NCBI GenBank assembly: GCA_964035545.1
Contig: OZ037771.1
Location: 1,747,628-1,811,627 of the forward strand
Direction of reading: 5' to 3'
Source of the DNA: Bugula neritina
Taxonomy: Eukaryota > Animalia > Bryozoa
DNA length: 64,000 bases
Positions 1-27,170 of the stretch are shown in pieces. Both the position numbers and the translations under genes were made by a program. Below the pieces are notes generated by a model that ran no database searches, had not been told where the DNA came from, and saw nothing but the letters and a program-made list of their open reading frames with translations. Each line of letters opens with the position of its first letter. The first letter of the stretch is position 1.

Positions 1-3000
1 GTACTCATGATGGTGAAACTGAACACTACTATGATGATGATCATCATCATGACAGTTATAATAAAACAGTTTCACTTTGAAAATTGAAATTAAAAATTGC
101 CATCATCATTCTGATTGTATTTATATAGAATATGTTTATAAAAGTATTTATATTGATATTAGAAACCGTATTGATTTTAAGCATTTGATATTTAACCCAG
201 TGATTGAATATTACTTCTACCTATTTAATCTTATATAATATTTATTAAATTTAAAATAAATACAACTATCACTATAACTTGATATTTAGTTTCACTATGA
301 CTATGAGTATTACTTTTACTATAACTATTAGTATTAGTATTAGTATAAGATTACGTAACACTAACAGTCAGTGGAACTGAAACTGTAATAATAATAAATA
401 TAGTAATCGTAATGTTAATACTTATGGTAAACGTAATAGAAGACACTGAGCCATGCGTAAAACGGCTTGAGCTGTATCATACAGTGTGAGTGTATGAGTA
501 TGATAGTGTATGGCAAACTGAAACTGCAAGAAATAAAATCAAGTTGAACATAAAATGTTTATTAATTCCTTTACCCGCAAAAATTAAAGCGGTTACAATG
601 ACAAACAAAATGCTTAATAATAATTGAGAAAAAAACAAAATTGTTATAAAAGAATAGAATATTATTGTCAATAAATAAAACTTCAGTGAAGCAAGTTTAA
701 AAGTGCAATTATTATAATGGAATGCAAACCGGAACAGATAAAGAAAGGTGTTTAATAGGTAAGGTCGAAAACACTTCTCAGTTCTACAACAATTTTATTG
801 TGATGGTGATCGACATACACCCTAATACAAAGCTAGGGGCTACGCAGAAATCTCAGCTAAGTCACAGTTGAGTCTATGGGGTTGTGGCTAAATAAAAAAA
901 TGAGAAGATAACTTGTGTTAGGATGAAACCTGCCAATGTTTTGCTTTTTAATAATTACGAAATCATTTAATTCTAATTATTGGAAATTTACAAGTTAAAA
1001 ACTAGTTTATAATTTAACCTAACGTCAAATTAGTGTAGGCTAATTTATATTCATAAACCCTACAAACTGAAAGCCTTACAATACTTTATTGTAATATATA
1101 TTACAATCATATTATATTGCAACTAGTGCTGTAGCATTATGGCCTATCAAGTCCCTGAAAACGCTTGAATCGGGCTACAAGGCATATAAAGTTAGTATGC
1201 ATGGTGTCAGCTAATATACAATATACAATATACAATATACATACCAGATTCTCGTCTCAAAGTGTTGAAAGATACTCAAATACGGTTTACTATTCTAACA
1301 TTTAAAATAGATGCTTTTGTTTTTTGTGCTATTTAAAAGAGTTGCTGTCAGACAGCATGGATAGCTAGGCTATGGGCCTCTTCATCATCTCTTTGGCATT
1401 TAAAATGTCTAAATTTTTTTGTTTTGCTAAACATTGATTATGTTGATAAAATTACCAAAAAAAACAAAATTTCTTATTTGTAAGAAATTCTACAATTTTT
1501 GGGAAACTTTTTAGTTTAATTTGTGAAATTTTCTAGTTTTATTGCATATAGATTTATTTCATAAACAATTTTAACATATATAGGCAGGTAACAATTACAA
1601 ATGTAAATATAATATACAGAATGCACAGAATGGAAGAATAAAACATTAATGGGGTGTGGGTGGGAGAGGTGGGGCTTTTTTTATTTATGTGAACGTTTAT
1701 TTAGAGCTGTCAAAGAAGTTATCCCCTCTCCTATTGCATCATTAAAACAACCTTCCAGTTTATCTGATATCAACTTTGATCTCTGAGTAGACTTGTCCTT
1801 TTCTTCATTTACTTTTATAAAATCTGCGCTGAGAGGTTGTTGAGAGATCTTCATCACAAGTAAATATGTTACCATAGCAGCTAACTAAAACAGTGGAATT
1901 TCCTGTTTATTAGAGTATTTATCTTACTTTAAGCGATATTTTGCTGCTCAAGAGAACTAAGAATTATGTACTTTAAACAGAATTTACTGATTACAGAATT
2001 TTCAAATGTTTTAAGAGTTTTTTCCTATTAAACTGAAGCAAGCAAAGGTACACCATTTTAATTTAATTATGACACACCAGAATGTCAGCTATTAGGCAAT
2101 TAAACTTTTAACTGATTAGAAAAACTATTAACAAAATTGTATAGGAAAGTACACCATTTTCTTTGTTGAGCATAATAAATTTTGCCTGTAGTAAATTTAT
2201 TGAATATTTTTGGTTGTAGTGAAAACTTGGCTTGTTTTAGAAAACTTTCATCGAAAAGTTTTCACTGGCGTTTGAAGATATTTTAAAAAAATTTATTCAA
2301 AGAAATGATGGTTTGTGAAAAAATAGTAATACATTCTTGGAATTTTAACAATTGTTTTATTGGAAAAAAGCTATGGCATTGTATATTATGCAGTTTTGAA
2401 ATATAAAAATAAGTTTAAAAGAGCTTCGAATTATATTATAATGTAGTTACCATGACTATTTCAATGAATGCCATTACAGTCAACATCCATGGGAAATTCA
2501 AATTCTCGGTGATAGCTCCACCCATTATTGGACCAATCATATTCCCCAATGCATAGACACTGTTGATAGTTCCAGATACTGCAGCATAAGTCTGTATACT
2601 GTCTTTTAAATAGCCATTAACTCTGTTTAGGATAAAAGAATAACTGCTAAAAATCTAGTCATTAGGATTAAACACAATTATTATTAGATAATGAAGTTGA
2701 ATGTTATATTATGTACCGGAAATATATTCTCTTATGTAACAATATGTTAGAAACTTTTGTTGTGAAAATGCAAAAGAAGATTATACTATTTATTAAAGCC
2801 TGCCTGTTGTACAAGTTTACAATCAATGAAGCTACAATAACAAACTTGGGTTGTGATGCACAAAATTTTCCTCCACTAAAATATATTTTTATTGAAGTAT
2901 TATATTATGTTATATTATTATATAGATATAAATTTTGTGTTCACTCACCCTAATAAGTTTAATTCAATTTGCTATAAAATTTCATTGTAATATATATTGC

Positions 3001-4209
3001 ATTATCATTTTATAAACAAACTTTGCAGTTATTATCATAATATTATTACATAATATTACATAATATTATATAATATAAATATATAATATTATATAAACAA
3101 ATGTGTTTACTCACCCTACTAAATTCAAAGATGCTTGATACGGTAAAATGAACATGCAAGCTTGGAAAGCTAGCTCTATAGGTATTAGAATCAGTGGGAG
3201 CAGCACATAACTAAAACAATTCATTTTTTTCTTCAAAACAACACAAGAATGACTAAAATATAACAATTACAAATCACTATTTATCTTTAAATGCCATCTA
3301 TACATGAGTGTGATTAGAATGAACAATGAACTGTTTGAGTAGCTTATTAGCCAACCAGAACTGAGTTTCATGCTGTATACAGTCTATCCCACCGTGCTCT
3401 TAGATTAATAAGCATGTTATGTTAGAAATAATTAAAATAACTCACTGTTTTCCATGAAATATAAAATCTAGTAGAGGAGATGGTCCAGTAAATAAGTTGA
3501 TGAATATGGAAACGCACCATGCCAGTATCATCAGAGACCATGTAAATCCCTGAAAATGTTTGCTTATTAATAATACAGGAAAGAAAAGTATAGTTTCCAT
3601 AAATTTTAGCAATATCGTTGACAACCTGCCAATGCCAAAATTTTTTCAATAGGATTATGCCAATAATCAGCATATTTTTGCTTTACTATATATGAACATA
3701 TGTTACCCCAAATCCAAACTACAAGATTGTGCTTATATTATTGCTATATACTCATATTACAATATAAAAAGTCAATACATCAAGTCACTGCATGTATCTT
3801 ACCCTTTTAGCAGCGAATGCTGCGAGTGGACAGCATAGAACATGTGCTAGAGTCCATATTCCATACAGCAAACCTGTTTGAACGGAGGTTTTATGAAACT
3901 AAAAGAAAGAATTTAGCTAATTTGCATTTCAAGTAAATTAAAGAAAGTTTTCATAGGGTACACATTGTTGAGTTACCCTACTCAGCTCCAAGCACTTGCT
4001 AGACTCTGTCAGGTAATCTCAGAGAGTGCCCTTAATGTTTATATGATCACTGAATGATGGTTTTTGAAAGTTGAAAATCAAAATTTTTAACAGAATATTG
4101 CCATCATTATTAACCTTTGCAAAACTTTTTTTAGAATTTGTTGAAAATTATTACTGTTGACAGACTATGCGCAAAAATAAAATGAGTTAGCTGAGTTCTT
4201 TTTAAAATG

Positions 4210-4360
4210 AAGATGAGGGACAAGGGCTATAAATTAGCTAAAGTTTACTTACAGTGAAGATGAGAGACACAGGCTATAAGTTAGCTAGAGTTTACTTACA
4301 GTGAAGATGAGAGACACAGGCTATAAGTTAGCTAAAGTTTACTTACAGTATATATGAGAA
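4210..4360 (-). repeat. 47-bp tandem repeat (x3) containing the exon-6 3' end and the GTAAGT donor of MFS copy A
   Basis: Donor cores ACT|GTAAGT have their G at 4346 (real), 4299 and 4252, exactly 47 bp apart. Confidence 0.9.
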
Positions 4361-5689
4361 AGTTACTAATTCCTGTGGTACGAGCACTGGACACTATTCT
4401 GGCCGTGAGGCAGTGACCTACCAAAACTAACATTCCAGGAATTGCTAGCAGACGATATACCTTTTTCTCTGATTTTTCTGCTGCTTCTAAAATTAGAAAT
4501 TTAGAACCAAAACTGTTTTTGGAGAAATAATGTATTTATAGTGATGGTAAGTTTGCTTAAAAGGAGCACAACCAGTAGTCAAAGTTAAGGGGGGGGGGTA
4601 TGTCGTACCCTCAACATAACATACCTATATCTGGTAGAACAACACTCAGAAGAATAATGAAAAGGCTTAATATTCCTCCCAGAATCCAAAACATGCTTTC
4701 ATATCCAGCCAGCTGTAAAACAAGATATTATTTAGTCACTTTATTATCTTCAACCTTTCAGTGCGTGAATTTGATTGGCTGAAACAGACCTGATCAGATG
4801 AAGAGTGACTTATTTCTAAAGTGAAAGCACGGCATATCTACTCAAACAGAGAACTTCTTTTAGCATGCTGAAGGTACAGATGGGCAACAAGTGACCCCAT
4901 CTGCCTGACTTTTTATCAATTTTGCAAAGGGACGAAACAGTGGCCAACTAAATCATATCATAAAATTATGTCATAGGATACACTTTTAAAAGCATTATAT
5001 TATAAAAACCTATAAAGTATAGCCTACAAAGAATTTTAAACAGTAGTTTTTATGGAATATTCAACAAACTGTTTCAAAGTTATAAACTTGAACAAATTAT
5101 TATCCAATATTGTGGTAAGTTTCCACTTATAGTTAGTATTCACTAGGTATAGGTTGCTAATGACCACTGTACCTGATAAATAGCCGAGCCGATGGCTGGA
5201 CCCACTGTATAGCCAGCTCCTGATACCATTTGCATCATTCCCTTTAAATAAACAGAGCACCAGCTAGTTTATAGTATCTAAGTCTAATTAATTAGAAGAA
5301 AAGTTTTTTTGCAACTAGTCAATTTTAGAATAGTATAAGCTTGATCAATTAGTCAAACTTCCAAGAAAGTATGCTTTTGTAATTATTATTGCTGTGAACA
5401 CTCTGGTAGTACAAAGGCTTTCAGTTGTATGGACTCCGAATCAACTCATGCTGGCAACAGGGCCTAGGGCTGTTAATGGTTTACAGAAGCAATTATATGA
5501 CTAAAGAATCTTTTGCTTCAAACATTAATAATGACATTATTAAAGGTGTGTTATTTACTATTTCAGCTTATAAACAAGTTTATATTGTTTAAAAAATATT
5601 TTGCAGAAACTTGAGTACTTAAATTTTTTCAACTAAAACTACTGAATCAAAAAGTATTAGCAGAATCTCTATTCTCTTAATTAAAGTAA

Positions 5690-5808
5690 ATACTCAGTAT
5701 GATTGTGATATATACTCACTATGACTGTGATACACTCACTATGATTGTGATATACTCACTATGATTGTGATATACTCACTATGATTGTGATACACTCACT
5801 ATGATTGT
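5690..5808 (-). repeat. 20-bp minisatellite made of the exon-3 donor junction (ACAATCATA|GTGAGTATATC), copy A
   Basis: About 6 units; five intact GTGAGT including the real donor at 5799. Confidence 0.92.
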
Positions 5809-5951
5809 GCTGTTGCTGTAAGACGTAGCTTTTAGTAGAATACTCATACCACAGACTACAATACATGCTGAACCACATCCAGCTATCATTCTAACTATGA
5901 TACACAGAGGGAGATATGCTTGCATGGTTAGGAGCGTATGATATCAATCTG

Positions 5952-5953
<2 letters not shown>

Positions 5954-6033
<80 letters not shown>
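5954..6033. repeat. (TA)n microsatellite abutting the exon-3 acceptor, copy A
   Basis: Pure TA run ending ...TATATTACAG|exon on the minus strand. Confidence 0.95.
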
Positions 6034-6036
<3 letters not shown>

Positions 6037-6727
6037 GCATGATGTGTAAAAAATTACCCTAATTCTAGTTTTAGACCACCTTCTGGTTATAAGTTGCATT
6101 TTATGTGAAAATGCAAAGCAATAAACTAAAAATATTGAGTGTGATGTTTATGAATAATCACTTTGATTCTAGTTTTAGACTATTTTATGGCTATAAGTAA
6201 ATTGTAAATAATGACATGCTTCCAAATTTATGGTGACTTGAAATACATCTGCATTTTTTAGTTTGGGCAACAAAAAATGTACTATAAGCAGCAATTATTA
6301 TTGAGATTAGTTCTAAAAGTATAGGCTACAAGTTTAAACGTCTGCTTTAATATTTTCAGCTGCCGAAAGCCCTTCAAATTTATATGAACCATTTTAAACA
6401 ATTCCATACCCAAAGAGAACACAAGAAGCCGCTGCTAGAATATTCCCAAATATGCATAGACTTCTGGGAGAAAACTTGTTAATCTAAAACCATAAGTAAT
6501 ACATTATAGGGCTGTAGCTTTATTGCTAAGGGGGCATAAAGATTGTACTCATCATGTTCAAGCTTTATATGTCACGGTTGATCAACTGATGTGTAGGAAT
6601 ATTCACTAGCAAGTATAAAGTATTTTTAGCAGAAATTGAAATAAATAAAAAAATTTCCCAGCCACCAATCTTTCCAAAGCCAGTTAGTTTAGAGTTTTAC
6701 TCCAGTGAAACGCAATGTAACTTGAGG

Positions 6728-6889
6728 TAGGTGCAGTAAGGTAGAAATTGAGAAAAGCCTGTGTTCTAGATTAGAAATGTAACAAAAGAAGCTATGTTCT
6801 CGCAATAATTTCAACCCGTGCCCCAAACCAAATTTTATAAATCACATTAAATAACTTAGGCTGTCTCAATTTCTCTACTATTGCTCCTA
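6728..6889. mobile_element. MITE-like element (family 1), TA-flanked, ~27-bp imperfect TIRs
   Basis: Left TAGGTGCAGTAAGGTAGAAATTGAGA; reverse complement of right end TAGGAGCAATAGTAGAGAAATTGAGA. A homologous copy lies at 15733-15875 in a non-homologous intron. Confidence 0.7.
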
Positions 6890-9236
6890 CAAATGTGTAA
6901 CTTCGCCACTAAAAAAAGAAGAGGTGGATGTTGTCTTGAAATGCATTAGTACTATCAACTGCCATAAAATAGTTTCAAAAAGTCAATAAATCATAGTTTG
7001 AGTTAATGAGCTCTGTCGTTCAGCTTAAATAATGTAATACAATCATACTAATGTGGTGCTAAAATCTCAAGTAGCCCCTATACCTACACTATGTATACAC
7101 ATAGTGTGTGTGTCTTCTGGTAACGGTGTAGTTGGAGTTCTTGCCGCCTGTGTGATTGCTCTGTTAGTAGTTCATATATATTCATATCCATGTTTCTCCT
7201 TATGAGGGTTGAAAAAAATACTAATAAGTCACCACTATACCTCGGACTATTCTAGTAAAATCAATAGAGAATAGCTTATATAGCTTAACCTTGGAATCAT
7301 TTATAGAGCTCATGCTAATTATGTAACGCTATGTGTTTGCAACTGAGTGAGTTTTAATTTTACCATTTAAAGCTTTATGACTGGCTTAAGTATAATTACT
7401 TATACAGTGCAGTGCAATGCTGCACTAAACATACTAAATTCGCACTAAACCAATAATGTACCTATAGCGAATCAGGCTAGGTGTAAGGACTTGCTTTATA
7501 TTGATGAGTTGTGTTTAAACTTTAAAGCTTTACACTTAAAAATTTGCTTTTTATAAAGTTTCAAGTTTAAAAATTGAAAACATGATTTCAATAATTCCTT
7601 CTTTTAAAGCTTTGACTTGAACATTATGGTACCAAGGTAATAATATTAACATACCTACTACTAAAACTATCGGTAGTTGAATTACACGTTAGTAGTTTGA
7701 CAGCCTCTAGTATATTTCAAAAATACAGCCAATAAAGTGCAAAAATTGCAAAGCTTTAGAAAAACACTATATTATGTACACTTACCAAATATCCAACTAG
7801 AAAAGCAGAAATAAATTTAGAGAACTCAAATGCTGAAAACACAATTCCTATTTCTGTGTCACCGATGCCTTTTTCTCGTGCCACAGGAGGGAAAAAAGGA
7901 ATTAAAAATGTATCAGCATTCATAGCTGAAAAGTTAACGCTCAAAGTAACAGCGATGAGACCCTTTTCCTTCCACCATGAGCTCTTTGAAAATACTCCTT
8001 GACACATGTCAGAAGTATAGTTAAAGATTTACAATCCAGGTATCAGAAGTGTGAATGATAGCAGTAGTACTCTGGTAATGATGAAGTTGAATTACCCACT
8101 TTCACATATAGTTGCTGTAAATATAATATGTTTAATGCGCCATGCTTGAGTTGCAAGAAGTTGAGACAAGGTTTATTAAGTACTTGTAGCGATCAGGTAT
8201 TTCAGGGTTACATACAGATGTTAATAAAGTGCATCCATGCAGTAAATACTTAGCATTTGAACATGATCTATATAATTGAGTGGGTCCATTACAATAACAT
8301 ACATCTTTATTTTGAATGCGAGCAAGTATAAAAAGTAAATTATATCAAACAATATATGCAGAGTGAGATATAATGCTTGGTTTAGTGCATATAGTTATGA
8401 ACTGCAGTGAAATACATTCAGTAAACTGTTTAAAAACAGACTCAACATAATATATCAGTTAGCTAGTAACCAATTAGATATGTCAATACCATGGGTGAAA
8501 GTCATCTAAAATTTTCATCATTATTTTGAAGTTTTGGCTCAAAGTACTGCTGCTTTAGATAGCAGCTAAGTCTTTAAAATACAGATACAACACCCACTGC
8601 AATACATAAATTTCTTTAGCAACTCATGATGTTTCACCTCTAGAGTCTAGGACTTTGGCTTAACTGCAATAATATTCTTCTATAACCCTCTTTTTGAAAA
8701 AGCTAATCTATTAAAATTTATTTTGCAGTCTCCTATCAATACAAAAAATGAGACTCAGCGACTTTAAACAACACAATGTTTAGAAAACAATATTTCTTAA
8801 AAGATGACTACCAAAGCTCATTGTCGCTTTTGTAAACACGATAGTAGATTTTATCTACTTTATTAGGGTGGATTCAGGCATAATTTAAACTTTACAATCC
8901 CATCACTTGCTTTTCATTTCATTATTAAGCTAGCATTGTTGCTAATTTATGGAAGTTTTTGTTCAACTGAAAAAGTAGTGCCTTAAAGAAGAAATAGGTA
9001 TCTTGAAGTATATCATTACGTAATCTGAGCCAATGTTCATGTGAGTTATAAACATAAGGGAATACAAGTTATATGCAGCTTCACAATGTAATATTATAAA
9101 GCTTTAAGCTTTTCTGTAGGCATATGATACGTGCATATCGTCGGCTAAAACATGGCATTGTATTATACTAATTATGCTTTTCATAAGCAGCAGTCATTTT
9201 ATTTGTTATAGTGCAATAATTATTGTTATATTTTAG

Positions 9237-10201
9237 TTATATAGAGCTTCCTCTTTCACTAATAGTCATAGAGTTTCTATTTCAACCCTTCATGTTTATT
9301 CTGCCATTTCAAGCATCCTTGAACTTAGCTGAGTGAGTATTAAAGTATATACTTATAAATTTTTTTATCAAAGTTTCCCACAAACAAGAAGAATTCAAAC
9401 AAGTACACTGCTGTATCAAGCAATATTTAATATTTAAATAAAATTTAATTTTAAAATAAAAAACTATTAGCAAAACAGATTGCCTTCTGATATCGAAAAA
9501 ATTGTAAAGCTAATTTTAATAGTACAGCACTGATAAATGTTGGTTTTGTGTTACCCAAACAACTAGCTGGCTTAATGTTGTTCTATATATTATATATTCA
9601 CTATGCTTTATAAACAGAGTTAACGGCCATTCAAAAGACAGTATGCAGACATATTATGCAGCAGTATCTGGAACTATCAACAGTGTCTATGCATTGGGGA
9701 ATATGATTGGTCCAATAATGGGTGGAGCTATCATAGAGACCCTAAACTTTCCTTGGATGTTGACTGTACTAGCCTTCATTGAAATCGCTATGGTAATTAT
9801 AATTCCCTATCCTATTTTTGTAAAAAACGTTGAGCATAATTAAGATTCAAAATAAACCTATGCATGCATACATGTAAGAGTTATACCACAGATGAGTACA
9901 GACATACAAACATTCCAAAATTAGAGAAAATTATTGTCAAAAGCTATGCATGACTCATCAAGAGTATACAACTCCAAGTGTTTACCCATTGTAGTTGGTT
10001 ACTAGAGTTACATATCTGCTTGTAATGAAGATTTCTCAACAACCTCTAAAGCCAAGTGATAATAATAAAGAAGAATTAGAAGACAGCATCTCAGAGAGGT
10101 CAAAGTTGATAACAACTAAACTAGAAGATTGTTTTAATGATGCAATAGAAGAAGGGATAACTTCTTCAACTGTTCTTAGTACCAAACATGCACCTAAATA
10201 A
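9237..10201 (+). pseudogene. Inverted, 5'-truncated SLC18B1-like fragment (last three exons)
   Basis: Plus-strand exons 9237-9332 (YIELPLSL..QASLNLAE), 9618-9792 (VNGHSKDSMQTYYAAVSG..FIEIAM) and 9995-10201 (LVTRVTYLLVMKISQQPL..) have intact splice sites and frames. No exons 2-8 are seen upstream on the plus strand. Confidence 0.85.
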
Positions 10202-10784
10202 TTTATGCATATCCAATTTTTAGCATTATGCACAGCTTCATGTTTTGTTTCACATTTATTCTGTTTATATTTGTTAATTTTTGTTATTTTTATTAAAAAT
10301 TTGAAACAGCGCTTTTTGTCTTTAGACTTTGTGTCTTTTTACTTTACACTTACAATTCTAATGTGTCAAAGGTAGTGCTACAATAAACCAATACAAAACA
10401 CTTAAATTATAACAGGATTTAACAGTTGCTGTATTAGTGCTGAAATATAAATTGTAGAATCTTGACTAAAGATGTTAGAACAGCTTACAACAAAAAAGTT
10501 AAATTGCTTGCAGAATTAAAGATTAATCAAATAAATTAAATTTACTCGCTTGTTATTTTTTCTTTTCACGCAGTGATTAAAGCAACTTCCTTCCGATACA
10601 GCCCCCATACTAGTAAGTCAGTCTCCCTCAAAGATGCTAGAATAAATTTTACAGCTGGTGTTTTTTTTAAGATTAATTCATGTCCATTATAAACTGATGC
10701 TATTGTAGCTACAATAAATAAACATATCTTAACTCATCAAATAATATATCCTATAAAAAATGCAAAAAAAATTAGATGATTTAA

Positions 10785-11749: not shown

Positions 11750-14700
11750 TCATTTAGACGAGTCATGGCTACTAAGAATAGTTGAAGAAGTTATCCCCTC
11801 TTCAATTGCATCATTAAAACAATCCTCTAGTTTATTTGTTATCAACTTTGACCGCTCAGAGAAGTTGTCTTCTACTTCTTCTTCATTATTATTACTTGGC
11901 TTAAGAGGCTGTTGAGAAATCTTCATTACAAGTAAGTATGTAACCATAGCAACCAACTACAAAGGATAAACACTTGGAGTTGCAATCTCATGAAGTATCT
12001 TGGATAATATTTGAGACTAGTTTTTTCCGAATAGTAGAGAATTGATTAAAATAAAATATTATTGCAACAAAGGCAGTTCATTTAAAAATTCACATGACCC
12101 ACAACTCTAATTGCAAATCACTTTGAAGAACTTATAATCATAAAAAGTTTTTTTATTTCGCTTCATCATATTTTCAATTTCTATTTTTACTTAATTTACA
12201 ACCTTAAAGTAAAACTATCTAATTGCATTAATATTTTATTAAAACTTGCTAAATTAAATCGGCCATAACTCAAACAGTGTTGGAGTTGCATACTCAGCTG
12301 AGTTGACTTAACAGTACATTTGGGCACATTATTCTTCAATTAACTCACTAGCTTTAACTTGGTTGTGAAGCTTGGGTCAGTGAAGAATAATATAGTTAAC
12401 AGAAGGTATAGCTAGTAAAACTACAGTTAGCTAGAACTTTAAAGAAACCTAATTTTGTTACTTTCTTTCATATTGATGCTTATATTATTGATTTTGTTAA
12501 ATCCTAAAACATAATCAATTACATAATCCACCATTTTGACTAGAAACTTAAATTTTGCATTTTATTTGGTGAACTTATATTCCGTGAACAGATGTTGGTT
12601 TATATAATTACCATGACTGTTCCAATGAATGCCATTACAGTCAACATCCAAGGAAAATTTAGGGTCTCTATGATAGCTCCACCCATTATTGGACCAATCA
12701 TATTTCCCAAAGCATAAGCACTGTTGAGAGTTCCAGATACTGCAGCATAAGTCTGTATACTGTCTTTTGAATGGCCGTTAACTCTGATTTTAAAACATGA
12801 TAAATAAACGTTGAACAATATTAAATTAGCAAACTGTTTGGTGCACAAAAAGTAATAAAAACAAAATTTCTCAAAGCAATTTTTTTGACACAATTTCATT
12901 AATACTAGAAGAGTAGAAAGCACTCTATTTTTTTATCACACTGATTCAAAAGTTAATCTATATGTAGCTAACAAGCATGACACATTCTTACTTATTATAC
13001 CATTCATCCCTATGGCAATCTTTGATGGGAAAAAATTTCTGCAGGGTAAGTACGATGCCTCTAACCATGCTGGTAATATTATCTAATGGCTTTCAAAGCA
13101 AGATCAAAGCCTCGATAACATCAATAGCTTTGGTCAGATTCCAACTAATAATCTATAAACTCAAACAACTAGACTATGGTAACTGCTTGCTAGATAAGTT
13201 AGTAATGCTAAATGATAATGCTTTCATTTAATATTAAACTTTATGTCTCTCAAACTTTGTAAAGATGATATAAAAGCTCCTAGGGTCATAAGTTTTAGTT
13301 TCAGTTCCATGTTTTAGTACTCACTCGGCTAAGTTCAATGATGCTTGGAATGGCATAACAAACGAATAGGCTTGAAACAGAAAATCTAAGGCTATCAGTG
13401 AAAGTGGAAGCCCCAGATAACTGAAAAATACCCAAAGATTAGTACAAAATATCAAGTGACATGACTGCTGTATGTAAACAGTATAGTTAGCATTATACAA
13501 AGTCATACTTCTTGCTGATGCTATATCTACATGTCATATGTCTACAAGAATAATTGTAGTTTCATAGACTATTCCATTAGAAGGCTGCATATAATTTGAA
13601 TTTCATTAACTTTTTAGGTTATTACACCCAAATAATTCATTTTAAGTTCTAAATCTTGTTGAGGAAAATAGAAATAACTAATAAGTATTAAAAACTTACT
13701 GCTTTCCATGAAATATAAAATCTAGTAAAGGAGATGGTCCAGCAAAAATATTGCCAACTATAGAAACGCACCATGCCAGTATCATAATTGACCATGTGAA
13801 TCCCTATATACAAAGGTAAATATTATACAATTATTCTAACATAAAATAAATCATTAAAAATAGCAACTATGTAGAGTGCTTTCAGATTCTATACTATAAA
13901 AGTTGCAGGAGTTGCTATGTGTAAGATAACACTTGGGTTTTAATGTACAGATGCACTTGGTATCATCTCCCAAAAATATGAACCACAAAACAACTATATA
14001 TATGTAGTAATAATTTACTGTAATTTGATAGCTACCTACAATATAGAGTATCAATACGTGAGCTCATGACATTGTTTTGAAGTTTGGTATTAGTGCTACT
14101 TCTATTTTAACTAGTCTTTTGTCTGCATTGCCAGAGCTTAGATTTAAAAGAGCAAATCTGACTGACAAAAAAGACCAAAATCAAATAGAGGCTCAAAAAT
14201 TACATTTATGTCAAACTAATGTGTTTTGTAACTATTTTTCAAGCTAGATATAAAAAAAATAAATTTGAAAATCAAATTGAAACTTTAACTTAGAGCTGAA
14301 AGCAAAATTAGCGTGTATAGATATTAATCAAAAATACAAGCTACCCGTTCTTAAGCATTTAGTGAGAAAACTAGAAGTATATAAAACATAAATATTATTT
14401 ATACCTTGAACTAATACATAACCAATAGTTTTAATGAGAAAATAGTTATGTTGACAGCAAATTCGAGTAATGCTGTGAGTATATTTCACAGCCACTTATG
14501 CATATTTAAATGTAAAATCTTTCAGTTAAAGTCACAGCTGTCTGATGTGCCCAGCTTAAAAAGTTTATCCTATTGAAAAAAAATTGTGAGAAAAAAAGAC
14601 AGTTGATTAATTGATTAGCTTTAGTATGCTATGCATATGGGATCTATATTCAAATATTCAAAATTATGTGATATTTTTAAAGCATGCAAAATTGCCTTAA

Positions 14701-17337
14701 AACCTTATTCAATTTTATTTATTTAAAAATTCAGCAAATAAAATCAATAAATTAAAGAACTATAATAGAACCACCTGTAGAAACATATATTTGCAATTAT
14801 AATTATATATATATATATATATATCTTCATTTATTGACCTTACCTTAGTTCCTATAAATGAAGCAATGGGACAGCTTATCATAAAGGCAAGAGACCAGAT
14901 GCCGTAAAACAAACCAAACTCAGCTGCTGATTTATGGAACTGAAAATGACATTAAATTATATGCTATTTATCACATACTTCAAAATTAAAGAAATTAAAA
15001 TGTAGGAGTGAAATAGCAATAACTTGTAAGCTTATTAAAATATATTACATAATAAACAGATCATTAAATGCATGACTAATTTAAACAAGCAGCTTTCTCA
15101 AAAGAGCCATCATCAAAAACTTTAACTATAAAACCATTTTTCCTTTATGAGAATAACATACAAAAAGATAGGGTGCTTTTGATAAATTTTAACCTGTTAA
15201 AAGCTTGTCTCACTATAAACTGTGAGTATTAAATAAATCTTTTATTCTAACAACAGGAAACTGATATTAGTGTTGATTTACCATTTAATTTAAAAAATCA
15301 AGAGTGATGTTTTTACTTACTGTAGAAATAAGGAAATTACTTATTCCAATGGTACGGGCACTAGAAACTGCTTTTCCTACAGTGCCATGAACAAGTAATA
15401 CTACAAATCCTGGAATTATTAGCAAATGGTGGAATTGTCTTTTTTGTTGCTTTTCTGATTCTGAAAGACATATATTATTGTTTTTATTTTAACTTTTTGA
15501 ATTCTTTATATAGAAAACATTATTACACTTGATTGAATAACAATGAAGAAAAGATACATGACTCAGTTTACCAATATTTGGTAGAACCAGAGCCATGGGA
15601 ATCACAAGAACAGCCAGAAACCCTCCCAGAATCCAAAACATGCCACCATATCCAGCCAACTACAAGGAAACCTGTTCATGCAAAAACTTATGCCAAAAGA
15701 TCAATTATTGTGTATATTAGTATAAACAAAAGTAGGTGCAATAATAGAAAAATTGAGAAAAGCTGTTCTAGATATGAAATGAAGCAAAAAAGTTCTTTCA
15801 ACCAGCATTTCAAGTTAGAATTTCTTAAGAAACCTAATAAATTAGACCATTTTCATTTCTCTCCTACTGCACCTAAATGCATTTGCTCTTTCAAATTTTA
15901 AAGATAATTTACCAAAAATAGCATATCAACAAGCAAGAAGATCAATCAAGTTACATTTCAATCAGGAAAGTTGGTTGGACCACAAAAAGCCTGGACTAGA
16001 AAAACTTAATCTTCTTTGAATGACCATATTAGAGCTCTGTCTTAGTTTAGCATGTTTATGATTGATTGTTAATAATTTTAAATCAATGCAAATGTGAAAG
16101 TTGCATGCATACATTAAACAGTCAATCCTTACAGTCAGGAATTTGATGAAGTGAATACAAATGTATTATAGGTTTTACTTTGTGCAAAGACAAAGATGAA
16201 TAATAAATAGGTAAAAAGTGCATGAGTTCCATTACCTTGTAAATTCCAGAGCCTATAGCTGGACCAGCTGAATATCCGGCACCTTCTATCATCTGTGCTA
16301 AACCCTTGAAAATATGAGATGGCAGTATTTTGATTAGGCTATGAAAAAGGGATAAATTGGATGTGGTGGTAACACCATCTTCCAAAAATGATATCTCAAG
16401 AATTAAAAAGTTGTAAATAGACATTTCTAAAATAGGACGACTAGAGTTCAATAAGCCAATTATGGTGTCCGGTGAAAAATGTCACCAGCAAAATTGGCAC
16501 AGTAACAATGCCACAAATGGCAAAGTAGGTAATAATAGCACATTTTCAATATTAGGGTTTGAGGTAAAGGTTGGGGGCTTGGAATGGGGGGCTTAGGCTT
16601 AGGAATAGGGGTTTGGGTTTTGGGTTTAGGAAAATTTAACATAAGTGTGCCATTTTGGTATACTTTTCCATTTGTGCTATTATTACCTATGCCATTTGTA
16701 CTAGTGTCATTTTTTATCTAAAATCACCAATTATAGATTTCCGTCGACAGTTTTTAAAATATAATACTTGAAAAGGAAAAAATATGTTTGAGATGAAATT
16801 TATGAAATGTCACGACTGTGTTCATTATAATCTAATGAAAGCTTCTTAATTATAGTCAAAATTTCACCATTTTTGTTATAAAAAAATACAACAAAATAGT
16901 ACGAAAAATAAGCCCACACTGCTTTTCGAGCTTAGAATTTGGTGGAAAATTTTGCAGTGAGAATGCAATTTAGATTGTAGTCTTAGATAATATTTCATCT
17001 AAAACTTAGTATGATTGTGATATACTCAGTATGATTGTAATATACTCAATATGATTGTGATATACTCACTATGATGGTGATATACTCACTATGATGGTAA
17101 TATACTCACTATAATTGTGATATACTCAATAGGATTGTGATATACTCACTATGATTGTGATATACTCACTATGATGGTGATATACTCACTATGATTGTGC
17201 TGTTGCTGTAAGACGTAGCTTTTAGTAGAATACTCATACCACAGACTACAATACATGCTGAACCACATCCAGCTATCATTCTAACTATGATACACAGAGG
17301 GAGATATGCTTGGTTAGGGGCGTATGATATCAATCTG

Positions 17338-17405
<68 letters not shown>

Positions 17406-18799
17406 TTGTGTGTGTGTGCAAACGCACGCGAGTGCGTACTAATACCATTACTATGCTACAATTAACCTATTAATAGAATTTATTAAGTGTTCACTTACAT
17501 AATAGCAGTCTAAATTGTTTAAAAAATGCGTTATTTAAAACGAAATATAACAGTTGAAAATAATGCGTTCATTGACGAATAATAAAAGCAAAAGAACATA
17601 TGAAAAGCACATATGTAGGAAAAGAACAGTAAGCACTTTAGAATAATACATATTGTGCCTTGAAATGATTTGTATTTTAATCCCTTACCCAAAACTAATA
17701 CATGAAGCTGTAGCTAATATGTGTCCTAATAAACAGCATACTTTAGGAGAGAATTGGCTAATCTACAATAAATGTGCAATGAATATTCAAAAAGTATATA
17801 TAACAGGACTTTGAGCGGAATTCTGGTTATGTGTCTGTCAGTTCTTTTAACTTGGAGTTGGGCTTTCACCAAACGATTTTAGATTAAAAAAACAACATTT
17901 CGATCTGAATAAACAGCTAAGTATAAGAGTTGTATTTTAGAAGACACTGGCTCATTAAATCTACTTGCAGTGTGTTGTGATCTCTACCGGAGTGGACAGA
18001 ATAATGCTATATTAGCATTTACTCAATGTATGTAGGTAATACGTTTGACTGACATTAATAAATTTTAATATAATTAATAGACTTGAGCTATTTATAGAAT
18101 AAACATCATACACAGAATTAAGGTCAGTGCTGCACACAGTTTTAAACAACAAATTATAATAAAATCACTCTTGATCTGCGTCACATGCATAAAGCTTTAA
18201 AAAAGGCGTTATGGATGGGTGGCTATAATATATGCATACTAAAAGCATTTCATCACAAACACAGTGACTCTGTAGCATGTTGTAGAGCTTGTTTACCATT
18301 TTTTATTTTTAGACGCAGAAACAGAGAAAACTTCAGTTGAAGCTTTTAATTGCCTTTCTGAACCTCGTTCTGTAGGCAGATTGTAAAAACAACTTTTTAT
18401 CTTATATTTCTTATCTAAGAAACAGATTTTTTCAATTTTTCCAATCCTATACCTTCTTCCGATTTTAAGTACCATGAAATATCTGTACCTCTTGAGTTGA
18501 AAAATAATAAAATGTGTTTATGAAAGCATGTTTATTTTCTTAAAATATTATAATAAAAAGTTAAAACTTACCAAGCGCCCAACAAGAAAAGCAGAAATGA
18601 CTTTGGAAAATTCATATGCTGAAAACACAATTCCTATTTCTGTGTCACTAACACCTTTTTCTTTAGCCTTCGGAGGGAAAAATGGAATTAAAAATGTGTC
18701 TGTAGTCATTGACATAAACTGTACAGTTAGAACAACAAATGTAAGAATTCTGTCTTTCCATGGAGATTTTATGCATGAAAATGATGATTCTTTGCTCAT
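11750..18799 (-). CDS. SLC18B1: SLC18B1-like MFS transporter, copy B (11 exons, ~472 aa)
   Basis: Exons 18572-18799, 17689-17762, 17190-17334, 16236-16304, 15572-15659, 15321-15460, 14844-14939, 13700-13803, 13325-13420, 12612-12783, 11750-11956; GT-AG, phases consistent, 1419 nt open frame. Contains PFFPPKAKEKGVSDTEIGIVFS, GAGYSAGPAIGSGIYKLAGY and TGPSPLL. Confidence 0.9.
15733..15875. mobile_element. MITE-like element (family 1), second copy
   Basis: TAGGTGCAATAATAGAAAAATTGAGA ... TTTCTCTCCTACTGCACCTA; TIRs, plus internal similarity to 6728-6889. Confidence 0.7.
16464..16728. mobile_element. Non-autonomous DNA element (265 bp) with GGTG..CACC ends, long imperfect subterminal inverted repeats, a G-rich core and a 6-bp TSD
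   Basis: AATTAT direct repeats at 16458-16463 and 16729-16734; inverted AAATGGCA/TGCCATTT motifs; core TTAGGG/GGGTTT-like repeats; not seen in the homologous intron of copy C. Confidence 0.75.
17003..17198 (-). repeat. 20-bp exon-3 donor minisatellite, copy B
   Basis: About 10 units; six with intact GTGAGT (real donor at 17189). Distal units are degenerate (CTGAGT, TTGAGT, CTAAGT). Confidence 0.92.
17340..17402. repeat. (TA)n microsatellite abutting the exon-3 acceptor, copy B
   Basis: Pure TA run immediately 5' of the acceptor TACAG on the minus strand. Confidence 0.95.
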
Positions 18800-20684: not shown

Positions 20685-20891
20685 TCATTTAGGTGTATCT
20701 TTGCAACTAAGAATAGTTGAAGAAGTTATCCCCTCTTCAATTGCATCATTCAAAAAATCTTCTAGTTTATTTGTTATTAACTTTGACTTCTCAGAGAAGT
20801 TATCTTCTACCTCTTCTTTATTATTATTACTTGGCTTAAGAGGCTGTTGAGAAATCTTCATTACAAGTAAGTATGTAACCATAGCAACCAA
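20685..20891 (-). pseudogene. Orphan terminal exon of an SLC18B1-like paralog (possible alternative last exon for copy C)
   Basis: Open LVAMVTYLLVMKISQQPLKPS..DTPK* with an intact acceptor CTCTTTGTAG; upstream intron resembles the last intron of copy B; no other exons nearby. Confidence 0.8.
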
Positions 20892-22105: not shown

Positions 22106-25100
22106 TTATGAATGTTTAAGTCCTTTAGAAGAGTCTTTGCAACTAAGAACATTTGAAGAAGTTATCCCCTCTTCAATTGCATCATTGAAACAATCTTCCA
22201 GTTTATTTGTTATCAACTTTGACCTCTCAGAGAAGTTGCCTTCTACTTCTTCTTTATTAATATCACTTGGCTTAAGAGGCTGTTGAGAAATCTTCATTAC
22301 AAGTAAATATGTAACCATAGCAACCAACTACAAAGAGTAAACACTTGGAGTTGTAATCTCCTGATAAAGGTGTTGTGTTTTATAATTGCAAATCACATGA
22401 CCTAATAATTGGCAAAAAGAGTTTATCAAATGAACCCAATTTAATTTTATTTTACTTTTACTCTTACTTTTACTAATTTTATTTATTGTTTGTGTGCGAA
22501 GCATGTTGATTTATAATTACCATGACTATTTCAACGGATGCCATTCAACATCCAGTTTGGAATAGAAAATTACAATTACCATAGCGAGTTCAATGAAGGC
22601 AAGTACACTCAACATCCATGGGAAATTTAGATTCTCAGTGATAGCTCCACCCATTATTGGACCAATCATATTCCCCAATGCATAGACACTGTTGATAGTT
22701 CCAGATACTGCAGCATAAGTCTGTATACTGTCTTTTGAATGGCCATTAACTCTGTTTATAAAGCATACAGTAACAAACATAGAATGATATTAAAGGTCAA
22801 TAAGCTCTTTAGTTAACACAAATAAACGAAAATAAAGTTTGCCATTGTTGCACTAATAAATTTGTCTACAGAATTTTATCAATAAAAATGGTGTAAGCTT
22901 TTCATAAGACAAACTCGCTCAAGCTTAAACAAAGTCAGCTAATAAACCATGAAATAATATTGGAATGGTTTCTTCTACATTTCTATTCTTTTTGGAAACT
23001 TTTAAGTTGATGATTGTAAGTGGGCAAAAAAGTCTTTTATACATGCTGGCAATTTTAAACTGGCTTTGGATGAATTCAGACCCTATAATCCAGTGCATGT
23101 GTGACATACTGTGACAGCTCTCTAGCTGCTAAACCATGATTACTCCTTTGCTACAGTAAAATAAGTTTATGACCTACTCACAGTAATAGTTACACTATCA
23201 CTCCACAAGTATGCTATGAAGGCTATTAGAACCTTTTAAACCTTAAGTTGAGTTATTCTGTTTTCTTGTTATGATTTATAATATACTCACTCGGCTAAGT
23301 TTAGTGATGCTTGAAAGGGGAGAACAAACATGCAGGATTGAAAAAGAAACTCTATGGCTATCAGTGAAAGAGGAAGCTCTATGTAACTAAAAATAAAAAA
23401 ATTATTATGAAACAACAGCAAGTATACTGACTATAAACAGCATCATAAAATATCACATTTCTAGCAGATACTATTCATATACCATACCAGAAGAGTCTAC
23501 AATTTTTTAAAAGACTGCATAATATTTGCATTTCTTCAAATTTACATACTACATAAGAATGAGACTTTTCCAAATCTCAATCCATCAAAATGAAAATATA
23601 AAATAATACAGTTTTTTGATGAAAGAATAACTCACTGCTTTCCATGGAATATAAAGTCCAGTAAAGGAGATGGTCCTGTAAAAAAGTTGATAACTATGGA
23701 AACACACCATGCCAGTATCATTAGAGACCATGTGAATCCCTGCAAAAGTAGAAATATGAAATAATTATAGAATAAAAGGTTCCATTTTTGAAATTACAAC
23801 TTTTAATTTTATAACTTTATGCTGATTTTTTGAACCTTAAGCTGATGTTCAGGATTTGATCAATTAAACTAATAAACTACTACACCAAGAACAAAATTAT
23901 ATTTAAAACATCTGTAAGAATAAACATTTTACATGTGTGTTCTTTGTTTATTTATTGACCATACCTTAGTTGCTATAAACGAAGCAATTGGGCAGCCTAT
24001 CACAAAGGCAAGAGACCAGATACCATAAAACAGCCCCGATTCAGCTGCAGTCTTATGAAACTAAAATGAGAATAAAATGAAATGATAATTTATAATGTAA
24101 TTGCGTGTTCGATAAAGTAAAATATTGCTATGCATTGCAATCGGCCTATAGGTTTGTTAGAACATGTAAAATTATTGTATCAATTACGAGCTCCCAGCCA
24201 CACAGGAAGTGGCCTTATAAAGAACTGCATGGCTTTAAAAGCCTTCCACACTATAAAATCCTTTTTGCTTCTCTCTATATATCATATACAGGAATAAAGG
24301 GATTTTACTTTTTCAAAAAATTATCATGCTAAAATTGTTCTTCAAATAATAAATAATAAAACTAATAAACTAAATTTTTATATATAATGACCGGGTGTGT
24401 AAAAATATTTTAATATGTAAATACCTAATGCACAGATTCTGTACTTCATTCATTTTCTACTCATAATCAAACTTGTGCCGTAATTAAGCCAGCTATCAAA
24501 TGATGAAGGTGAGTTGGAAACAAAGTTTTGAAATTAAATCAAAAAAGATATTTAATTGCTTACCGTAAAAATAAGAAAATTACTAATTCCAGTAGTTCGG
24601 GCGCTAGCAACTATTTTTCCTACAGTGCAATGAACAAGTAATACTAAGATTCCTGGAATAACTAGCAAATGGTGAAACTTTTTTTTCTGTTGTTTTTCTG
24701 ATTCTAAAATATAAATATAACATCTACTCTTGAGAATCACTTTAATTGAGTTCTTTATAAAAAATAATGTTAAACATGGTTGATGATTAATAAAAAATAA
24801 ATAAAAAGATACATGACTCATCTTACCAATATTTGGTAGAACCAGAGCCATGGGAATCACAAGAACTGCCAGAAACCCTCCCAGAATCCAAAACATGCCG
24901 CTATATCCAGCCAACTACAAGGAAAATATTTCATATAATGAATTGTATACTGTGTATCAATTATTGTGTGTAACTCTAGCATATATCTCATGATTAGTTT
25001 TTTTGAAAGTAGTATAATACAAATACATACATACAGACCATCACTATGTTTCCATTGCTCTGCAATATTCGAATGAAATTTTTGTTAAATGTTTGGAAAC

Positions 25101-25808
25101 AGTTGCATCTGATGAAACTTTAACAGTAAGAGGACGCAAACCACCACAACAAATTCATCCTTGGGTTCTCGGGTTTAAATCCCAGAGGAGGCAAAATTAT
25201 TTTATAATTGGTGAATTATAAAAGATTGAAAAATGCATTGTTGTAGTGTGCCTGAGCAATGTTACCTTGTAAATTCCAGAGCCTATAGCTGGACCAGCTG
25301 AATATCCTGCACCTTCTATCATCTGTGCTAAACCCTTGAAAATACAAGATACAAAACTATGGAGGCGGATATATTGGTTGTGGCCGCTTACAGGTGACAG
25401 CTTATTAATTATAACCAGGATTTATTGCCATTATTTATGTGATTAGAAAACTAGGACAACATATTGAAAAAAGTAATATATAACCCCAGTTACAGCCATG
25501 TAATCGTGATATATTCCCTATGATTGTCATATATTCACTATGATTGTCATATATATTCAGTATGATTGTGATATACTCAATATGATTGTAATATACTCAC
25601 TGTGATGGTGATATACTCAGTATGATTGTGATATACTCACTATGATTGTGATATACTCACTATGATTGTGCTGTTGCTGTAAGACGTAGCTTTTAGTAGA
25701 ATACTCATACCACAGACTACAATACATGCTGAACCACATCCAGCTATCATTCTAACTATGATACACAGAGGGAGATATGCTTGGTTAGGGGCGTATGATA
25801 GCAATCTG

Positions 25809-25876
<68 letters not shown>

Positions 25877-27170
25877 AAAAAGATAGCTAGATAAAAAAGT
25901 TTTTAAATTAAAAAGCCATCATAAAACAGTATGAAAAGTTTACACAATGAAATGGTAAGCATTTTAAAATATATACAAGTTGTGCCTTAAAATGGTTTGT
26001 AATTTACTCTCTTACCCAAAACTAATACATGAAGCTGTAGCTAATATATGTCCAAATAAACAGCATACTCTAGGAGAGAATTGGCTAATCTACAATAAAT
26101 GTTCAATAAAGATTTTAAAAGTTCCGAATTCAGTTATTGTGTAGCATAAATGTAAGTGAGAATACTAATTATATGCCTTTATGGCCTATATTTATTCAAA
26201 GTGAGAGTTGTGCTTCATTAAAATACAGAAACCCAATGCCTTAATGGAGATAGATGGCAAGTTGAATGTAATTAAACTCTTTGTACTAATAAATTGCTAA
26301 CTTTTAATTGCATACGCAGCTAGTAATGTAGAATAAAGATTGATATCAGATTATCTTTCAAGATGATTGCATTGCACTCACCCAAGTCAGTTAAAAAGTT
26401 CTACTTTAATCTGAATAGAGAGTTAAAACAAGTTCTACTGACTCAAATAATGTTTTCTGCAGTGTGCATTGATCTCTACTAAGTGTGACAGTGAGCTAGT
26501 CTTATAACTGGATTGTATAAACTTGAATGCCTTTAATAAATTTGAGCTTTATATACCAGAAAAACTTCAGCAACAAAATCAAATTCTGCATTATATACAC
26601 AGTAGTTAAATATAAAGCGCCTTTGACAAAAAAGCTGACACTGCAATGATGAGATGGGTATCTAAACCCTATTATTTACAATTTTTTTTGAGATAAAATT
26701 AATGATTTTTACAGTGAAGGAAGGCAAAACAAATAGTGTGTAGCTACAATATTCAAATACCAGGTGAGCAGTGGGTGTTGAAGACACAAATACATTGACA
26801 GTCCCAACTGGTATAATATACACTCATATTACATGTACCATTTGACACCACTTATTCCTACCATTACATATGAGTAAATTGTAATGTTTTACCCATGAGA
26901 ACACCTTTTAAGCTCTTTTATTTAATAAATTTAAAACCTTACCAGACGTCCAACAAGGAATGCAGATATAACTTTTGAGAATTCAAATGCTGAGAATACA
27001 ATTCCTATTTCTGTGTCACTAACACCTTTTCTCTTTGCTTCGGGAGGGAAGAAAGGAATTAAAAATGTGTCTGTAGTCATTGCCATAAACTGTACAGATA
27101 GAACCACAAATGTAAGAGTTCTATCTTTCCACAGAGAGTTTATGGATGGAAGCCGTAAATATTTATCCAT
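22106..27170 (-). CDS. SLC18B1: SLC18B1-like MFS transporter, copy C (11 exons, ~477 aa)
   Basis: Exons 26943-27170, 26016-26089, 25661-25805, 25266-25334, 24827-24914, 24564-24703, 23965-24060, 23636-23739, 23291-23386, 22580-22751, 22106-22327; internal exon sizes and phases identical to copy B. Confidence 0.9.
25495..25669 (-). repeat. 20-bp exon-3 donor minisatellite, copy C
   Basis: About 8-9 units, increasingly degenerate away from the exon; real donor at 25660. Confidence 0.9.
25811..25873. repeat. (TA)n microsatellite abutting the exon-3 acceptor, copy C
   Basis: Pure TA run in the same position as in copies A and B. Confidence 0.95.

Follow-up and report, generated by a model that had tools for sequence, protein, structure and literature searches.

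Exon 3 of three tandem genes for SLC18B1-like transporters of the major facilitator superfamily (MFS) in the bryozoan Bugula neritina is nearly identical between copies that have diverged elsewhere, and the comparisons described here make it very probable that recurrent short-tract interlocus (ectopic) gene conversion keeps this exon and its immediate flanks alike. Two repeats enclose the exon, a (TA)n microsatellite before its acceptor and an array of 20-nt units at its donor; under this explanation they would be edges and passengers of the conversion tracts, which are ~0.15-0.4 kb long, and not a device that conversion requires. The genes lie in a 64,000-nt stretch of assembly GCA_964035545.1, which was analysed as a whole and is called the window herein, while genome-wide searches covered 216,009,554 bases in 321 contigs. 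The assembly, tzBugNeri2.1, was made with hifiasm from PacBio HiFi reads at 132x and has a quality value (QV) of 53.7; its genome note describes no polishing.

Near-identity of exon 3 in three tandem genes

The three paralogous genes, A, B and C, follow one another on the minus strand, each with 11 exons bounded by canonical AG/GT borders; their aligned coding parts span positions 1699-7974, 11771-18760 and 22142-27131 of the window, respectively. Exon 3 of B (17190-17334) is 145 nt long, is entered in phase 2 and left in phase 0, and encodes the segment LISYAPNQ...NSTII, which carries an R-x-x-x-G-x-G-type motif of the fourth transmembrane segment (TM4). Its counterpart in C (25661-25805) is also 145 nt long, and that of A (5800-5948) comprises 149 nt including a 4-nt insertion; all three exons have AG/GT borders. 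We found that exon 3 of A differs from that of B by a single synonymous substitution and the 4-nt insertion, that B differs from C by a single substitution (Ile/Leu), and that A differs from C by two substitutions and the insertion.

The remaining ten exons are 72-74% identical at the nucleotide level between A and either B or C, and 88.6% identical between B and C. Synonymous divergence (dS, Nei-Gojobori) is 0-0.03 for exon 3 in all three pairs, versus ~1.0 for the other ten exons together in the pairs A-B and A-C, and 0.37 in the pair B-C. At the A-B background rate, the binomial probability of observing one difference or fewer in 145 nt is 2.6e-19, and the longest identical run, 131 nt, compares with a maximum of 43-56 nt in 2000 permutations of the alignment columns. 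Chance is excluded as the source of the exon 3 identity. Past the repeats, the introns of A have no detectable similarity to those of B or C, and the introns of B and C retain weak residual similarity. A preliminary description of this DNA had reported near-identity of exon 3 in all three copies, synonymous sites included, and this was confirmed by realignment and by the dS contrast. The peptides that it had quoted for exons 2 and 4, as examples of far divergence between A and B, were likewise correct.

A second lineage and the overwriting of copy A

A profile-free search with the exon 3 peptide returned two near-identical proteins, P0001 and P0002. The former is KAF6026593.1 of the B. neritina assembly GCA_010799875.2, and its contig (VXIV02002243.1, here L045) aligns collinearly with gene A, introns as well as exons, at 84-87% identity. 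The latter lies on a 2.1-kb contig from JGI (here L046) that is collinear with gene C, introns included. As this collinearity extends through the introns, we refer to the two as the orthologues A' and C', respectively. Both proteins are singletons in 90%-identity clusters, and B' and further copies were not recovered there. Metagenome contigs scanned with a 24-nt core of exon 3 gave no hit, a blank without weight because such scans may omit records of this genome or of one very close to it. A and A' differ at 56/853 nt in eight other exons, with proportions of synonymous and nonsynonymous differences (pS and pN) of 0.194 and 0.026 (window positions 1400-8559 versus L045), and their introns differ by ~15%. 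The lineage of A' is well separated and presumably a further member of the species complex around B. neritina; the two assemblies publicly available for B. neritina probably stem from different cryptic species. A' carries 1-nt indels in exons 1 and 10, which may be draft errors or decay, and the gene model deposited as KAF6026593.1 is built from part of exon 1 and from exons 3 and 8 alone. In the window, the 4-nt insertion of A (~5922-5926) shifts the frame of exon 3 into a stop, so that gene A either became a pseudogene very recently or carries the insertion in the heterozygous state; every exon of A but the third is open, and pN/pS between A and A' is ~0.13.

The grouping of the copies was evaluated in an alignment of exon 3 and two array units from A, B, C, A' and C'. 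Four sites are fixed between the lineages and common to the paralogues within each (exon positions 13, 15 and 121, and array position 155), while no site in this alignment pairs A with A' or C with C'. The same homogeneity is seen within the second lineage: A' and C' differ at 26/74 nt in exon 2 and 12/42 nt in exon 4, whereas in exon 3, counted from nt 9, a single substitution and a single indel separate them. There, homogeneity stops after array unit 1, and the 5' edge of the tract lies inside exon 3 of A', which has a normal pyrimidine-rich acceptor, no (TA)n and four private differences in nt 1-7 of the exon. In C', no more than a short TATATA seed stands ahead of the acceptor in place of (TA)n. 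States that are shared by paralogues and specific to a lineage are the classical signature of concerted evolution by gene conversion, here in both lineages.

Copy A itself records one such replacement. Homology between intron 2 of A and that of A' ends exactly at the outer end of the microsatellite of A, (TA)40 at 5954-6033; the microsatellite precedes the exon 3 acceptor, and at this outer end A-type intron meets B/C-type DNA. The next ~325 nt of the A' intron, together with its acceptor and the start of its exon, are missing from A, which has the B/C-type (TA)n, acceptor and exon start instead. This break in homology and the loss of the A-type acceptor indicate that, after the two lineages had split, A was overwritten by B/C-type DNA over a stretch reaching from within the (TA)n across exon 3. 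The replacement is non-reciprocal, since A carries B/C-type sequence where A' retains its own. The (TA)n is thus young and specific to this lineage, and it was the conversions that spread it to all three copies.

Because the dS contrast, the permutation test, the states shared among paralogues, and the replaced acceptor and intron tail of A all point the same way, gene conversion is strongly supported. We envisage that a break near exon 3 in one copy would be repaired from a neighbouring paralogue. Tracts would stay short as only the exons and the shared array still offer homology, and the island of identity would thereby be kept for further conversion. In A, synthesis from a B or C donor may have run upstream into the hairpin-forming (TA)n, and the upstream end was probably joined to the A intron without homology at the (TA)n, deleting ~325 nt of intron. 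Slippage in the donor array, an old minisatellite of exon 3, would blur the downstream end. The repeats may also contribute as hot spots.

Flanking repeats and conversion elsewhere in the family

Pure (TA)n and an identical acceptor stand directly before exon 3 in all three copies of the window. The run of B, (TA)31.5 at 17340-17402, adjoins the acceptor and has no homologous (TA)n in L045 or L046; that of C is likewise (TA)31.5, at 25811-25873. When the exon was folded as RNA together with its flanking repeats, solely a trivial long (UA)n hairpin was obtained, beside the 3' splice site. Long (TA)n are frequent in the introns of this family, with 22 in the 130 kb of a ten-gene cluster on contig C7 (described below).

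On the donor side, the 20-nt unit consists of the last 9 nt of exon 3 and the first 11 nt of the intron (GTGAGT and five further bases), and the array therefore restarts the donor directly after the exon. It extends over about 17004-17199 in B (~9-9.5 units), about 5690-5809 in A (~6 units) and about 25503-25670 in C (~8 units, two of them 22 nt long), in each case on the minus strand. Copy number varies: A has about 6 units, B about 9.5, C about 8, A' about 12 and C' about 13. The unit is not a multiple of three; any later donor would give a stop at the junction with exon 4, and the first donor alone keeps the frame. Units 1 and 2 are nearly identical among A, B and C, and later units are 85-92% alike in any register. 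The earlier statement that identity ends at the two repeats is therefore accurate for the junction in A, which coincides with the outer (TA)n end, and for the decay within the array, but too sharp in that the first two array units still belong to the nearly identical part.

In distal units, the first donor base is the one most often changed, with GTGAGT becoming CTGAGT or TTGAGT (17004-17189, 25503-25660 and 5690-5799 in the window, L045:12870-13103 and L046:1386-1640), and in the 22-nt arrays of a three-gene cluster on contig C3 (described below) GTGAGT becomes ATGAGT. These base changes suggest that decoy donors are being disabled. In the array of C', G and C units alternate, giving a higher-order period of 40 nt. 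A second junction array, private to A, follows the donor of exon 6 (exon end 4347), where three units of 47 nt (4208-4349) each restart the donor.

The donor array is not confined to A, B and C. At least 15 paralogues have an array behind their exon 3 homologue, built of units of 20, 22, 24-26 and 38-40 nt, and in the C7 cluster 6/10 exon 3 donors lie in a tandem array versus 1/86 other donors (Fisher test, 1.5e-6). The donor array is thus a trait of exon 3 across the family and not a private boundary device, although its excess at exon 3 donors can be explained by shared ancestry of the paralogues.

Exons other than the third have also been homogenised. Exon 4 of B (16236-16304, minus strand) differs from exon 4 of C (25266-25334) at 1/69 nt and from that of A at 23/69, and exon 2 of B (17689-17762, minus strand) differs from C at 3/74 nt and from A at 28/74. 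Between B and C, pS is 0.07 in exons 2, 4 and 5 versus 0.40 in exons 1 and 6-10 (Fisher test, 1.2e-6). In these three exons B is closer to C than C is to its own orthologue C' (for exon 2, 3/74 versus 5/74 nt), and no repeats adjoin them. By this comparison, B and C have converted exons 2, 4 and 5 too, with exon 4 a separate event without flanking repeats. In exons 8 and 10, A is as near to B or C as B is to C, which hints at older events. Exon 3 is the sole exon of the window cluster in which the distant copy A takes part.

Two further clusters behave similarly. In the ten-gene cluster (C7:4.66-4.79 Mb), gene g2 differs from g5-g10 with pS of 0.13-0.26 in exons 1, 3 and 10, versus 0.57-0.91 elsewhere. 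In the three-gene cluster (C3:84-144 kb), gene h1 is 97-99% identical to h2/h3 over a 1.3-kb tract (C3:91629-92923 versus 107274-108195) that starts just before exon 3 and spans a 22-nt array, exon 4 and a 49-nt array, introns included. Outside this tract, exons 5, 8 and 10 differ by 25-32%, and the matches to exon 2, which are less securely homologous, differ by ~40%. Exon 3 is homogenised in all three clusters examined, each of which has a donor array. Short-tract conversion is thus a habit of this transporter family that is neither bound to (TA)n nor strictly limited to exons.

Assignment to the family was made from protein matches. Exons were searched against Pfam singly, and exons 1 and 10 of gene B match MFS_1 (PF07690) with 29.6 and 21.7 bits, where the cut-off for a whole protein is 33.4 bits. 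A paralogue from the database, P0005, matches MFS_1 at 9.7e-21 (74.5 bits) and SLC18B1, of solved structure, at 7e-16; its database model splices exon 3 straight to exon 4. The family is expanded, with at least 34 exon 3 homologues in the genome. Two duplication relics lie near the genes, a partial copy of exons 9-11 that sits in inverted orientation between A and B (9061-10210, plus strand), which has no counterpart in L045, and an extra copy of exon 11 downstream of C (20688-20891, minus strand). Other minisatellites of the window (34838-34966, 49696-49935 and 58091-58497) have GTAAGT- or GTGAGT-like cores on one strand and may be further junction-seeded arrays in neighbouring genes.

Alternative explanations and known parallels

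Fragile sites and hot spots of recombination are known at long AT repeats and at minisatellites. The preliminary description had proposed that the repeats serve as pairing or initiation points that make exon 3 a repeat-delimited exchange cassette. We consider a hot spot of this kind, in which the (TA)n, the donor minisatellite or both cause breaks or pairing, possible but doubtful. The exact position of the A junction, the decay of identity within the first array units, and the homogenisation of exon 3 in every cluster that we examined, each with its array, are what such a hot spot would leave, and exon 3 alone both involves the distant copy A and has an array in all copies. However, neither A' nor C' has a (TA)n, and their exon 3 is homogenised all the same, with a tract edge inside the exon; exons 1, 2, 4, 5 and 10 were converted without adjacent repeats; long (TA)n are common in introns that lie elsewhere in the family; and the arrays diverge faster than exon 3, and so are not its best-paired part. 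The proposal thus survives for the position of the A junction and for the decay in the array, whereas the sister lineage, the repeat-free exons, the 1.3-kb tract of the C3 cluster and the family-wide occurrence of the array speak against a delimited cassette. Its companion claim, that conversion is restricted to the exon, stands insofar as conversion is centred on exon 3, but is weakened by the C3 tract, which covers intron. A more elaborate version, which we think rather unlikely, would make the donor-junction minisatellite a long-lived part of exon 3 across the SLC18B1-like family, found in at least 15 paralogues and rebuilt with units of differing length; as a recombination hot spot, it would hold exon 3 of every tandem cluster in concerted evolution while selection disables the downstream decoy donors.

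Other explanations dispense with conversion between the genes or change its template. Nucleotide-level purifying selection alone, under which exon 3 would be ultraconserved (for example by dense splicing enhancers) and would never have diverged, is very improbable. It would fit the core of the exon (128 nt, 17190-17317), delimited after the data had been seen, where 1-2 differences separate lineages that differ by 6.6% in other exons and ~8 would be expected from 56/853; over the whole of exon 3, B and C' differ by five substitutions and one indel in 145 nt, which is not clearly below 56/853. An unusual splicing context, in which a (TA)n folds into a hairpin beside the acceptor and decoy donors follow the exon, could also demand exonic signals. 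Yet selection would require parallel substitutions to produce the four lineage-specific states shared among paralogues, it does not account for a non-coding (TA)n and acceptor that are common to A, B and C and absent in A', more distant paralogues are only 35-57% identical in exon 3 at the protein level, and no Rfam family was matched at threshold. Conversion templated by spliced or partly spliced RNA or cDNA, homogenising exons and not introns, would suit the pair B-C, in which exons 2, 3, 4 and 5 are 96-99% identical and the introns between them are barely alignable and of unequal lengths. We give it marginally less credence still, as the intronic acceptor, the (TA)n and array units 1-2 were co-converted with exon 3, the C3 tract includes intron, and no intron has been lost from A, B or C. 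Least credible of all is an artefact of the assembly or consensus, by which three distinct exons would have been merged into a single sequence. Nothing speaks for it positively, although the (TA)n of B and C are exactly equal in length, and the read depth and quality of an assembly for which no polishing is described offer no way for 400 bp to have collapsed. The copies are separated by 8-11 kb and set in unique flanks, each has private differences and an array structure of its own, and two independent data sets, the NCBI draft and the JGI contig, show exon 3 alike in A' and C'.

Three further candidates were rejected. The exon with its flanking repeats and its 20-mer array occurs at three sites only in 216 Mb, which is not the pattern of a transposon, dispersed repeat or mobile cassette. 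Rfam searches for a structured RNA gene gave low-complexity matches far below gathering scores, and for an antisense gene the sole plus-strand open reading frame of at least 40 amino acids is a read-through of the (TA)n.

Several points weigh against recurrent gene conversion as the whole explanation. Conversion is read here from sequence comparison, and the direction and number of events were inferred without an outgroup. The orthologous sequences are two only, they come from different sources, and B' is not among them. Conversion does not slow divergence between lineages, and nucleotide-level constraint, such as splicing signals, may add to the identity of exon 3. Finally, no rise in GC content at third codon positions (GC3) points to GC-biased conversion, as GC3 of exon 3 is 0.31-0.33, inside the range of the other exons; such enrichment is frequent and not obligatory.

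Mosaic concerted evolution of tandem paralogues through interlocus gene conversion is well described, in Caenorhabditis (PMC3966223), in the mammalian pairs BMP8A/B, DDX19A/B and TUBG1/2 (PMC2720389) and in teleost duplicates (PMC10503786). The Bugula genes share with these a short tract that is near-identical, synonymous sites included, in otherwise diverged tandem paralogues, paralogues that are closer to each other than to their orthologues, and mosaic edges that recur across lineages. Homogenisation of exon 3 is thus a new instance of a known process, and its mechanism is ordinary. Unlike the catalogued cases, the Bugula tract covers about one exon and joins copies that are saturated at synonymous sites elsewhere, and through it a distant paralogue acquired a young microsatellite and an acceptor while losing ~325 nt of intron; unlike the mammalian cases, the tract shows no rise in GC3.

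The array has parallels of its own. In intron 7 of human F7, the first unit of a 37-bp variable number tandem repeat (VNTR) spans the boundary of exon 7 and intron 7 (PMC1557585). The 20-nt array of Bugula similarly starts inside an exon, and look-alike donors trail the true one. The minisatellite of IFI6 (6-16) likewise starts within an exon and repeats the donor. In contrast to both, the Bugula unit of 20 nt is not a multiple of three, later donors would give a stop at exon 4, and no fewer than 15 paralogues have an array at this exon, in units of several lengths (20, 22, 24-26 and 38-40 nt). SLC18B1, to which the family is compared, is an MFS-type vesicular transporter with solved structures (9d7u-9d7x). 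The Bugula family is greatly expanded and of low identity to it.

This locus offers a compact and well-controlled natural example of very short-tract conversion between tandem paralogues that are saturated with synonymous change elsewhere. It also holds a datable event, as a young microsatellite and acceptor moved into a distant copy after two cryptic B. neritina lineages had split. For annotation and phylogeny it is a warning, since trees or dS values from single exons of this transporter family would misdate its duplications. If the donor minisatellite were indeed the hot spot, a splice-site minisatellite would tie splicing control to exon-level concerted evolution, and it could be tested directly at this locus whether concerted evolution at the level of exons is seeded by intronic minisatellites.

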